Assembly (NCBI GenBank): GCA_002104945.1
Contig: MCFH01000100.1
Location: 1 to 64,000, forward strand
Length of the DNA: 64,000 bases
Source: Piromyces finnis finn
Lineage: Eukaryota > Fungi > Neocallimastigomycota
Reading direction: 5' to 3'
The notes beneath the pieces are model-generated. The model was given only the letters and a program-made list of their open reading frames with translations, searched no databases and was not told where the DNA came from. Numbering within the stretch: position 1 is the stretch's first letter; each line of letters begins with the position of its first letter. A program made the position numbers and the translations under genes. Shown in pieces: positions 1 through 34,838 of this stretch.

Positions 1-1284
1 AATAATATTTCAAAATTTTACTTTTATTTTAAAATATGTTATTGAAATAGTAATTAAATTGTTTAATAAAATAAAGATATTTAATATAATTAACCTTGTA
101 ATCTTGTATCCCATCACATTAATTAGGTCGAGAACCAGACTGCCGGTATTAAATAATTAAATTTTGATTATTTTGACATGAAATTTAAATTTTTATATAA
201 TATTAGTTAAATTAAAGCCAATATTTTTTAAAAAAACAAAATCTTTGGTAAAACGTAAAACGATATATCAATATATCTTTTGAAGTTATTTAATTTAGTT
301 TAAAACTTTAATTCTATTTGTTTTATTTAATTTGTTTTTTTTACAGTATATAGTATATAAGAAATAGAACGTATTATTATTAAATTTTTTATATATGATT
401 TTAATATTTTAATTTAATCAAGGTTATGAAATAATCTACTAAATGATTTATTTAATGTATTCGAATTATTAAAATTCATCCATTCGATTAATGTTGTTCA
501 GTTAAATTTCTATATTATTTTTATTGTTAATGAAATTTTATAATAGTTGCTATTTCGCTATTTCTACTACTACTACTACTACTACTAATAATATAATATA
601 TAAATATATATATTACTCAAAATATTATTTATGAATCAAAAAAATATTTTTTTTAAAGAGTAATATTTTATTATTATTATTATTATTATTATTAGTAGTA
701 GTAGTAGTAGTAGTAGAAATAGCGAAATAGCAACTATTATAAAATTTTCATTAACAATAAAAATAATATAGAAATTTAACTGAACAACATTAATCGAATG
801 GATGAATTTTAATAATTCGAATACATTAAATAAATCATTTAGTAGATTATTTCATAACCTTGATTAAATTAAAATATTAAAAATCATATATAAAAAAGTT
901 TAATAATAATACGTTCTATTTCTTATATACTATATACTGTAAAAAAAACAAATTAAATAAAACAAATAGAATTAAAGTTTTAAACTAAATTAAATAACTT
1001 CAAAAGATATATTGATATATCGTTTTACGTTTTACCAAAGATTTTTGTTTTTTTAAAAAATATTGGCTTTAATTTAACTAATATTATATAAAAATTTAAA
1101 TTTCATGTCAAAATAATCAAAATTTAATTATTTAATACCGGCAGTCTGGTTCTCGACCTAATTAATGTGATGGGATACAAGATTACAAGGTTAATTATAT
1201 TTAAATATCTTTATTTTATTAAACAATTTAATTACTATTTCAATAACATATTTTAAAATAAAAGTAAAATTTTGAAATATTATT
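1..1284. repeat. Near-perfect palindrome (arms about 1-592 and 688-1284, spacer about 95 bp); the left arm is cut by the window edge
   Basis: Position 1 pairs with 1284. tcgagaaccagactgccggtatt at 128-150 is the reverse complement of 1134-1156. The (CTA)n/(TAG)n tracts mark the inner ends. The arms differ by a few SNPs/indels. Confidence 0.95.
128..150 (+). promoter_or_regulatory. Conserved GC-rich motif TCGAGAACCAGAC(T/C)GCC(G/A)GTATT of homeodomain-gene upstream regions (copies at 128+, 1134-, 23390+, 32571+, 37101+)
   Basis: The same motif lies about 1.05-1.15 kb upstream of all three homeodomain ATGs and is followed by TTTTGACATGAAATTT. A regulatory role is inferred. Confidence 0.5.
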
Positions 1285-2400
1285 ATAATTTAATAAAATA
1301 TAAATAGGATTATAATAAATTGAATAAAAATTATTTATTATAACTACAACGGAATTTTAATATTTTATTTATGAATTATGGTCATTATAAATTGCGACTG
1401 TATAAAAACAATTATGTATAATTTATTATTTTAATTGTTTTCCAGAGTTTATAGATATATGGCTTTTCAATTTTTTAATTGATATATCAGAATTATTAAT
1501 GAAGTAAATAAACAAAAGAAAAAAATCTATTTAATAAAATAAATAATATATTATAATATTTTTTAATTATTATATTATATCAAATAATGGTAATTCATTA
1601 GCTATATAGAATATATATATAATAGCATTTGTATTTTATTCTATTCTATTTAATATTATTTTATATTATATTATATTATGATATATTAAACAATTACATT
1701 ATAATATTTCTATATTATACACTATATAAAATAATATAAAATGTCTTTTTTCTATTCTATATACATCTTCAAATTATCAAGTAAAATTTTGATATTTGGT
1801 GTAAAATAAAATTAAATCAATAATGGAAGGTACATCTAAGCATCTAGTAATGAAGTATAATCAAATAATATTATTTAAATTCATATGATACATTATAGCC
1901 ATGAAAAATTTTCTTCCTTATATACAATTTGTGGCTTGATTCTAAACTAATAAATATTTAATACAAATACATTAAATTAATACAAATAAGTAAATTGATA
2001 GATATTAAAGTATTTCTATAATATTGCTTTTTTTTTATATATAATTACTCTATAGTAAATCAAACGATATCAAGTGATATTCCATATTAAACATAAATAT
2101 TTCCTTTTTAGCTATTTATTTTATAGCAAAATAAAAAAGACAATGCTTGATATATATTGATTATGTAAAACAAAATAAAAATGACAATATTTAAAGTATT
2201 TACCTATTTACCAAGAGAAGAGGGATTGGTGGGTAATACAAATAATATACAGTATAAAACTAAAAAGGAATATCTATTTACATTATATATTATTATTAAT
2301 AAAAAATAATAATTTTAGTATTAGAAATAAATAATTTATCATATAAAAGACAAAATATAATAATAATAATAATAATAATAATAATAATAATAATAATAAT
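688..2400 (-). repeat. Inverted copy of the HD-C upstream region (about 35770-37567)
   Basis: tacctatttaccaagagaagagggattggtgggtaatac (about 2200-2240) is the reverse complement of about 36020-36060. The match continues through the conserved motif and the (TAA)n tract. Confidence 0.9.
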
Positions 2401-3129
2401 AGAGCACAATAACAAAAATAAAATATAAAATTTTAATTTTTTTTTTGTTAATATTTTTATATAAGCATTATTGTTATTATATGATTTATATGTATAATTT
2501 ATTTAAAAACAATATAATAAAGCAATACTAATAATAAATATAAAGGAAATTCAAATAAGATCGCAAATATAAGAAACTATAATAATTATATATATTAAAG
2601 ATTATATATATATTGTTAAATACTTAATTTGCATTTTAAATAAATAGATATATATTCTGGAATTAGTTTGTGTTAACTAATATAATTCTTTAAAACCAAA
2701 ATAATAATTATAATAAATTACATTAGTTTATTAAAACTATAAAATAAAATAAAAAAATAATAAATATATATTAAAAACACTTTATTAAAAAATATTTTTT
2801 AATTCTGGCATAATTGTAATTTTATGAGTTTTTCCTTTTACCTTTTTTGATTAAGATATTTGTAAATGTATTTTTTTTTTTACTTAAACATAAAAAAACT
2901 AAATATAATAAACTCTTTTCTTTATTATAATTAAATAATAGTAGGTGATTTTTGCCTTTCTAAAACTTAATAATATACTACAATTAATTTATACTACATC
3001 CCTATATCTCTATATGAAATATAGTATATGATTTTAATAATAATTATTTCTACAATGTGAAATAATGAAATGTAAATATTTGACAAATATAAGAATACGT
3101 AATGTAGATGTATAATCCCTAGAGTTCCG

Positions 3130-33400: not shown

Positions 33401-33717
33401 ATAATATTAATAAAAGACATAATATTACACTTTATGGCACTAAAACAATTAAAAATTATAATATAAAATAATAAAATATATATAACAGTATAATAAAATA
33501 ATTACAAATATAATAAAAAATAAGTAATAATTAAAAAAAGTCAGATTTGAAAAAAAAATATAAAAGGATTGAATTTTGATTTATTTTAAAACATTTATTC
33601 TTAATTTGTATTATTTATATAATTAAAAACATTCTTTATATTAAGATATATTAAATATATCAAAATACTTTAAAAAGAAACTCATTATACTTATATTCAA
33701 CATAAAAGAAAGTAACA

Positions 33718-34838
33718 ATGAATTCAAAAAAAAGTCTTTCGAATACCTCGAATAATTTTTTAGAATCACCTAATCCAATTTTTAAAAGAAATTCTACATT
33801 ATCAAATAAACTTCTTAGTGATATTATAACAAATGATAATACCGCTGTATCAAGTTTTCCTTTAAAGCTTCCGGAAATCAGTAAGAGAAAAAATGACTTA
33901 ATTCAAAATATAAGCCGAAATTCAAGGCAGAATAATAATTCAGTAAATATTATATTTTTATTTATTGTTTTATTTTTTATTTTATTTATTTATATAACAT
34001 ATTTTATATTATATTTAATTAAAAAAAGTATTAACATTTTTTAAATTTAATAATTATATATTTATATACTATTATAGTTATTTTCAAATTTATCTTCACA
34101 AGACTCTTTTTCAATTGAAAACACAAGTCCAATATTAAATAATGCATCTTCAATGCCAGTACCAATAATTGACCCCTCTTTTATTAGCTCATCATGTTTA
34201 TCATTTGAATTATTTTCATTTAATGATATTTTTACTTCTTTCTATTATTCCAACTCAATTATAGCCGAGTCTTGTTCTAATTTACCTACAAATCAAAATC
34301 AAAATATAAATCAAAATTTATGTAATTACAAAAGATCAGCTAAAAATACATATTCAAATACAATTTTAAAAGAAAAAAAACAAAAAAATAAATGTGGGAA
34401 CTCAAAGAATCGTAAGCGCACTAAGTTTTCCAATAGAGTGACCAATATATTAAAAGAATGGTTCTCAAACCATTCTTTCCCTTATCCCACTATTATTGAG
34501 AAGAAGCGTCTTTGTGAAGCTACAGGACTTACAATGGTAAGTTATTTATTATTATCAATATTATAATTATTTTATAAAATAAATATATATATTAACAATA
34601 TTTTCTTTTTATATTTTTTATTCATGCTACATAATACAACCTATAAATGAATTTATATATATATAATTAAATATTAAAAATCTGTTTTATCTTTAGGATC
34701 AGGTATAAATTTTAAATGATTTTAAATTACAAATTATAATAATGATATTTATTACAATTCTAATTTCTAATTATAAATTTTATTTTAATATTATAGCTTA
34801 ATATCTGGTTTATAAATGCTAGACACCGTTATACATAA
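33718..34838 (+). CDS. TALE-like homeodomain protein HD-B, join(33718..33942,34078..34536,34697..34702,34797..34838), 243 aa
   Basis: KEWFSNHSFPYPTIIEKKRLCEATGLTM|DQ|LNIWFINARHRYT*. Splice sites are homologous to HD-A. Confidence 0.88.

Follow-up and report, generated by a model that had tools for sequence, protein, structure and literature searches.

The window analysed here, the first 64 kb of contig C3 (73,090 bp) of the Piromyces finnis genome, carries three kinds of gene in close neighbourhood: four (P1-P4) for a short peptide ending in a CaaX box, three (HMG1-HMG3) for HMG-box proteins, and three (HD-A, HD-B, HD-C) for TALE homeodomain proteins. The explanation towards which we lean, at about even confidence, is that they belong to a neighbourhood kept by selection and spread by patchwork duplication, which would amount to a signalling-plus-regulator module of mating or cell-identity type. 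All copies were compared within a single genome of the species, the assembly searched comprising 56.46 Mb in 232 contigs; besides C3, the cassette-bearing contigs compared are C11 (50 kb) and C185 (359 kb), and decayed copies lie on C143 (13.6 kb) and C197. Repeat structure was derived from self-BLAST of the window and a repeat finder, and split genes were searched for domains and profiles exon by exon. G+C content is 13-22% across the window, one island at 34% excepted. An earlier note on this DNA had described two oppositely oriented cassettes of peptide, HMG and homeodomain genes, A around HMG1 and B around HMG2; it was right on cassette B and on the peptide and HMG genes of A, but missed HMG3, P4, P2, HD-A and HD-C, as well as the modules on C11 and C185. 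The genes of the three kinds in the window are:

4571-6156, plus strand: HMG1 (exon 1 4571-5787; phase-2 intron 5788-5954 within the HMG box; exon 2 5955-6156)
7001-7150, minus strand: P1, type 1 CaaX peptide gene, 49 residues, convergent with HMG1
10009-10158, plus strand: P2, type 1 CaaX peptide gene, 49 residues
24523-25812, plus strand: HD-A, TALE homeodomain gene (exons 24523-24753, 24889-25509, 25771-25812; putative 6-nt micro-exon 25671-25676)
28060-28212, plus strand: P3, type 2 CaaX peptide gene, 50 residues
28898-30472, minus strand: HMG2 (exon 1 30472-29262; intron 29261-29100; exon 2 29099-28898)
33718-34838, plus strand: HD-B, TALE homeodomain gene (exons 33718-33942, 34078-34536, 34797-34838; putative micro-exon 34697-34702; annotated model P0018)
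38154-39656, plus strand: HD-C, TALE homeodomain gene of the subtype with a long N-terminus (exons 38154-38720, 38858-39358, 39615-39656; putative micro-exon 39515-39520)
43857-44009, plus strand: P4, type 2 CaaX peptide gene, 50 residues
50857-52383, plus strand: HMG3 (exon 1 50857-52022; intron 52023-52181; exon 2 52182-52383; annotated model P0002)

The peptide gene occurs seven times in the genome: besides the four copies in the window there are two on C11, one of them a redundant copy of P1, and one on C185. Its products of 49-50 residues have a polar N-terminus with no hydrophobic leader, lack a signal peptide, and end in ...NINPYVTCSCVVQ. The CaaX box CVVQ is followed directly by the stop codon in 7/7 copies, and the stop is retained despite a 3-nt deletion in type 1. 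The last 21 residues are the same in all copies at 20 positions and show a V/I swap at the other; the front half drifts, being ~60% identical, and its indels (6, 3 and 3 nt only) are all in frame. The tail has accumulated 2 changes in 63 nt against a divergence of 18% in the flanks (P = 3e-4), which indicates that it is under purifying selection, and the G+C content of the reading frame (27%, against 10-13% in the flanks) resembles that of the exons of neighbouring genes. A short product without a signal peptide, with a drifting front and a near-invariant CaaX tail, bears what reads as the signature of a farnesylated lipopeptide (pheromone) precursor. The genome encodes ICMT and a Ste24-type protease (N-terminal domain), both scoring above their cut-offs; these are general eukaryotic enzymes, necessary for pheromone processing but not specific to it. 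With their help the peptide would be farnesylated, trimmed and methylated, and could serve as a secreted or membrane-bound signal, of which the HMG and TALE proteins may be the regulators or effectors, the three together constituting the proposed module.

The HMG gene is split within its HMG box: a GTATGT-type donor follows the second base of a codon at the end of exon 1, and exon 2 holds 66 codons. The annotated C185 paralogue, P0001, uses the same splice junction as modelled for HMG2, and in each of the six distinct copies the frame is open, the donor reads GTAYGN, the acceptor CAG, and exon 2 encodes 66 residues. Their dN/dS is 0.25-0.5 overall; in the final 145 codons of exon 1, which lie before and within the box, it is ~0-0.35 (median ~0.2), values indicating that the DNA-binding domain is under purifying selection. 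Decayed copies with many stop codons lie at C143:946-4477 and C197:187850-189644, and because such stop-riddled pseudogenes exist elsewhere in the genome, the intact copies are not intact merely from youth. (The C143 copies form an inverted pair, which adjoins a copy of the 1,153-residue open reading frame (ORF) found after the last HMG gene of C11.)

A profile of the HMG family matches the HMG boxes of SOX17, Capicua, SOX9 and LEF1 (E = 2e-5 to 7e-4), and relatives of the P. finnis proteins score 27.6-32.7 bits against HMG_box (cut-off 25.4) and share a conserved helical stretch that precedes the box. Only 16 such relatives turned up when 1.84 billion proteins were scanned in full with HMMER; several of them are open frames on AT-rich gut metagenome contigs that stop at the position of the P. 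finnis HMG intron. By these matches the family would be a lineage-specific and divergent branch of the sequence-specific SOX/MATA class. Two further candidate signals were set aside: the motif 'RPLN.FM', read as a MAT-alpha-box, has a single sub-threshold match, in a relative; and the HMG site AACAAAG, present 19 times against 11.6 expected (4/100 shuffles reach 19), is no evidence, because those close to peptide genes belong to one repeated block.

The homeodomain genes belong to the TALE class both by profile match (Homeobox_KN, 40.3 bits for P0018 and 34.7 bits for P0019; cut-off 24) and by the three-residue loop extension between helices 1 and 2. The motif W-[LF]-x-x-H-S-F-P-Y-P is present in 8/9 copies, HD3 of C185 having YYP for PYP, and two subtypes differ in having a short or a long first exon. 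The homeobox intron contains, ~155 nt from its start, the string AG/NNNCAG/GT, conserved likewise in 8/9 copies; its central NNNCAG is a putative 6-nt micro-exon, which would lengthen the protein by two residues and bring back the canonical Q-x-x-x-W-F spacing. The annotated model P0018 omits it and aligns 37 residues to 40 profile positions. Over the homeobox dN/dS is 0.2-0.46 (seven intact-copy pairs scored), pointing to purifying selection on the domain, and in the region before it ~1, nearly neutral. The homeobox segment of HD-B (34432-34531) is only 83% identical to that of HD-A (25405-25504; dS 0.32), in contrast to 97-99% in the adjoining intron, a pattern that gene conversion in patches could produce, or else selection favouring different versions of the homeodomain. 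Relatives are few for this family as for the HMG family, and both are lineage-restricted.

The arrangement of these genes in cassette B is as the earlier note had it: P3 is convergent with HMG2 (689 bp from stop to stop), and HD-B is divergent from it, starting at 33718, 3,245 bp from the HMG2 start codon. In cassette A, P1 is indeed convergent with HMG1, and the proposed reverse-complement match between the cassettes is found at 3972-6211 against 31071-28840 (94.6%, 2,259 nt) and at 6669-7710 against 28549-27484 (84.4%); the gap between the two parts is there as well, at 6212-6668, but the match ends at 27484 rather than 27290. The mirror image extends over the HMG and peptide blocks and lacks the homeodomain part. 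The region 688-2400, which had been taken for that of a leftward homeodomain gene, falls within 668-2437, a copy of the spacer between HD-B and HD-C (block W) and not the counterpart of HD-B; nothing that corresponds to the 4.6-kb HD-B unit (31263-35814) lies between HMG1 and 668-2437, where a 1.5-kb stretch with an element resembling a miniature inverted-repeat transposable element (MITE) stands instead. Nor is there a homeodomain gene to the left of cassette A, as had been expected: the window opens at the first base of its contig, and the overlapping C11, of which 1-7761 equals C3:8343-595 in reverse complement at 99.8%, runs on leftward into ion-channel gene fragments without a homeodomain. 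Cassette A thus consists of a peptide gene and an HMG gene and does not mirror all three parts of B. The repeats of the window, kilobase matches of 84-99% identity far beyond chance, and the features associated with them are:

3972-6211 (plus), 31071-28840 (minus), 50254-52416 (plus): repeat block X, ~2.3 kb, with the HMG gene
6630-8104 (minus), 9000-10514 (plus), 27484-28668 (plus), 42882-44462 (plus): repeat block Y, 1.1-1.5 kb, with the peptide gene
6630-8104 / 9000-10514: inverted repeat of 1.5 kb (91.5%) carrying P1 and P2 back to back
8337-9199, 26633-27481, 42296-43074: repeat block Z, 0.85 kb, non-coding
22886-26470, 31578-35508, partly 37654-39734: HD unit, ~4 kb, with the homeodomain gene
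668-2437 (minus): repeat block W, 1.8 kb, no gene recognised; inverted copy of 35824-37595 (96.6%, 1,784 nt)
35824-37595 (plus): repeat block W in direct orientation, between HD-B and HD-C, by self-BLAST
1-1284: palindrome with which contig C3 begins; its two arms are 96.8% complementary (self-BLAST, 1-1284 against 1284-1)
3019-3904: MITE-like insert with terminal inverted repeats of ~98 nt (3019-3116 against 3904-3808, 78.8%)
40807-42254, minus strand: fragments of a four-domain ion-channel gene, co-duplicated, which also adjoin a peptide gene on C11

That this layout is largely an artefact of assembly, through haplotigs, collapsed or expanded repeats, or a hairpin read at the contig end, is very improbable. 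The 99.8% match of C11 to C3 is one place assembled redundantly, C3 opens with a palindrome, which may have been produced by assembly at the contig end or may be a genuine inverted duplication of the terminal part of block W, and C3, C11 and C143 are short, repeat-laden contigs, C3 ending within a gene. Against this, the copies differ by 2-18% in their DNA and have distinct indels, flanks and gene order, so that they cannot be one sequence assembled twice, and the flanks of the C185 module, which is embedded in a contig of 359 kb, are unique.

The order of homeodomain gene, peptide gene, convergent HMG gene and second homeodomain gene (HD and peptide genes on one strand, the HMG gene on the other) is colinear over ~13.6 kb between the window (22.1-35.7 kb) and C185 (281.6-295.8 kb, 82-92%), and on C11 the stretch 11.2-21.9 kb is colinear with the window module from the peptide block on (93-98%), channel fragments standing in place of the upstream homeodomain gene. 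From the colinearity of the three it follows that the whole module was copied. The proposal that the multi-gene module is the unit of duplication is thus supported for C185 and C11, but does not describe cassettes A and B within the window, where the blocks are discordant. The peptide block of C185 is closer to P3 (93-97%) than P1 is, and the C185 HMG gene is the outlier among the HMG copies (dS 0.12-0.18, against 0.05-0.11); since block identities disagree in this way, the blocks have separate histories, by recombination, gene conversion or independent inversion. P4 and HMG3 lie on the same strand, 6.8 kb apart, with an Agd3-like gene in between. No further gene within the module emerged from G+C islands, and neither block W nor the HMG-HD spacer holds a gene or a notable island. 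Telomere repeats were not seen at the contig ends.

The neighbourhood of peptide, HMG and TALE genes would thus owe its copy number to segmental duplication block by block, together with inversion and gene conversion, in DNA that is unstable and rich in repeats. These events would have left full modules (on C11, on C185 and at 22-36 kb of the window), partial ones (cassette A with peptide and HMG genes; P2 and P4 without a convergent HMG gene) and dead copies (C143, C197). That it travelled as the cargo of a large mobile element spreading through the genome is hardly credible: reverse-transcriptase and gypsy-type integrase ORFs adjoin the C185 module and the MITE-like insert lies beside HMG1, but no transposase, integrase or terminal repeats bound the module, its breakpoints differ between copies, and it contains no transposon genes.

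Co-duplication had been taken to suggest functional linkage; it is weak evidence for it, because segmental duplication copies whatever lies there, and unrelated DNA (channel fragments, non-coding blocks) was co-duplicated too. The same observation favours an account in which the genes are functional but unrelated to sex, the lineage-specific regulators serving, for example, zoospore or thallus development, the prenylated micro-protein being a chance neighbour copied along with them by segmental duplication, and the likeness to mating loci being accidental. The discordant block histories agree with this account, as do the many non-mating roles of HMG and TALE families, the restriction of both regulator families to this lineage with few relatives, and the failure to find the pheromone receptor family in the genome. 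It would, however, leave the specific signature of lipopeptide pheromone precursors in the peptide unexplained, and the peptide gene lies at most 0.7 kb from an HMG gene and 5.5 kb from a TALE gene in three diverged modules, which is an unlikely coincidence. We regard this account as unlikely, though to be taken seriously, and prefer the reading of a selected module of mating or cell-identity type.

Several observations nevertheless weigh against the preferred reading. The P. finnis HMG copies, their exons searched separately, reach 15-20.5 bits on the HMG_box profile, below its cut-off, and some of the intactness of the genes could still reflect youth, because copies differ by only 5-18% at synonymous sites. 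The peptide has no relatives in a word search of 5.8 billion proteins, JGI metagenome contigs and the ESM Atlas, and exact look-ups of four peptide variants gave no match among transcripts. A six-frame search of the genome found no match to the Ste3 and Ste2 receptors (PF02076, PF02116), from which a very divergent receptor could escape; the same approach detected the membrane proteins ICMT and Ste24 in this genome. Published surveys confine Ste2 and Ste3 receptors to Dikarya (PMC3251606, PMC12842992). The nearest HMG relative (55% identical) is carried by metagenome contig L022, where the 10 kb upstream of it contain no homeodomain. Finally, no sexual cycle is known in Neocallimastigomycota, and a survey found no complete mating pathway (PMC6883316).

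As to relatives, the cassette order for which the earlier note proposed to look was not found: the HMG relatives lie on contigs of 2-18 kb without a CaaX ORF or a TALE gene. L022 ends short of the expected position of the peptide gene, and its flanking ORFs have no match in the cassette contigs of P. finnis; the other relative contigs measure 2-9 kb, and of the 5 loci to which the HMG family alignment led in metagenomes, none was informative.

Stronger than the preferred reading, and in our judgement doubtful, is the claim that the window holds a true mating-type region, in which the peptide would be a pheromone, the HMG and TALE proteins would set cell identity, and the oppositely oriented cassettes would be paralogous specificity sub-loci or substrates for inversion and switching. 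The triad matches the determinants of mating loci in Dikarya and Mucoromycota, HMG2 and HD-B are divergently transcribed, and inverted repeats flank both P1/P2 and the Agd3-HMG3 segment; several identical pheromone genes lie in inverted repeats in the MAT locus of Cryptococcus; the low identity of the HD-A and HD-B homeoboxes beside near-identical introns fits older, selectively kept specificity differences. But a mating locus would be expected once per haploid genome (twice if tetrapolar), and there are at least two separate loci with intact modules, C3/C11 and C185, plus the pseudogenes of C143 and C197; the peptide tails are all identical, so that the copies would be without distinct specificities, a linked or unlinked Ste3 or Ste2 receptor was not found in the genome, a sexual stage is not known (PMC6883316), and one relative (L022) is without an HD neighbour. 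The analogy with mating loci thus extends to the gene content, the region encoding regulators of the kinds expected (HD, HMG or alpha-box), and to the divergent HMG/HD pair, but no defining property of a mating locus could be shown. Improbable in like degree is the wider conjecture that the cassettes are the sex-determining system of Neocallimastigomycota, with a farnesylated pheromone that is sensed by a receptor unrelated to Ste3 and is linked genetically to an HMG and a TALE homeodomain regulator, and with an inverted multi-copy layout allowing switching or several specificities. Judged by its sequence, the locus is a candidate for cryptic sexuality or cell-identity signalling; as a mating-type locus it is a candidate, not a demonstrated one.

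Comparison with known mating systems gives a mixed picture. The MAT locus of Cryptococcus combines multi-copy pheromone precursors, a Ste3 receptor and one homeodomain gene. Like this large fused locus and other basidiomycete mating loci, the P. finnis region has short CaaX precursors of pheromone type in several identical copies, some in inverted repeats, and, as in Cryptococcus, a TALE-class (HD1-like) homeodomain gene nearby and a large, repeat-rich, rearranged setting. In contrast to Cryptococcus, P. finnis has no detected Ste3 at the locus or in the genome and no HD2-class partner, its homeodomains all being TALE, and it has an HMG gene inside the module, with copies at two or more loci; nor is it a Dikaryon. 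With the sex locus of Mucorales (a TPT gene, the SexM or SexP HMG gene and an RNA helicase gene) it shares a central HMG-box regulator in an early-diverging fungus, but the neighbours of the HMG gene are CaaX peptide and TALE genes; TPT matches occur only on C167 and C113, with no HMG_box match beside them, and none on the cassette contigs. The pheromones of Mucorales are trisporoid compounds, not peptides.

Ascomycete MAT loci likewise contain MATA_HMG-type regulators, yeast MAT has a TALE homeodomain (alpha2), and the a-factor and M-factor precursors, of 36-44 residues, also end in a CaaX box and lack a signal peptide. However, ascomycete pheromone genes lie outside MAT, the P. finnis cassette has no alpha-box gene, and its HMG family is only distantly related, with its own conserved helical region ahead of the box. 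In the putative MAT locus of Glomeromycota (HD1-like/HD2 of Rhizophagus), too, a mating-locus-like homeodomain set was found by genomics with sex unobserved; that locus, unlike the present one, is a single divergent HD1/HD2 pair with strain-specific alleles, whereas P. finnis has many copies and no HD2.

Anaerobic gut fungi are important fibre degraders without genetic tools, and intact genes of all three classical kinds of mating determinant provide concrete, testable candidates: a lipopeptide, two regulator families and their loci. If the module is related to sex, breeding of gut fungi would be opened, and the locus would help to judge whether HD, HMG and peptide signalling were united in the ancestral mating locus of fungi; if it determines sex, peptide-pheromone, HD and HMG determinants would occur together in a zoosporic lineage, and lipopeptide pheromones would predate Dikarya. 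If it is not sex-related, it nevertheless shows clearly how regulator families specific to a lineage are moulded by block-wise duplication and gene conversion.

The window contains several other genes and repeats. Pieces of a four-domain cation-channel gene are scattered over 40807-42254 (minus), 20072-20215 (minus) and C11 8059-10986, and a seemingly complete copy at 62282-64000 (minus) runs off the end of contig C3. The Agd3-like gene between P4 and HMG3 (45671-48226, minus) is intact and encodes an Agd3-type galactosaminogalactan deacetylase of 851 residues with CBM87, CE and C-terminal domains (E = 1e-78) and a Thr-rich tail; it forms an island of 32-34% G+C in DNA of 15% G+C, is flanked by an inverted repeat of ~250 nt (44792-45033 / 50089-50338), and looks like a transfer of bacterial origin. 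A 98-100% inverted repeat (18844-19691 / 21369-22149) with long (TAT)n tracts, read as poly-tyrosine ORFs, is found also beside the C185 module. Known RNA families are absent from the 64-kb window, and the multi-exon gene region at 12400-18500 (21-24% G+C) has no Pfam match; its last ORF, 17691-18209, encodes a Thr-rich linker and repeated GYFINN motifs. At 58897-59586 (minus) lies an ankyrin-repeat gene with an internal tandem periodicity of ~100 nt.

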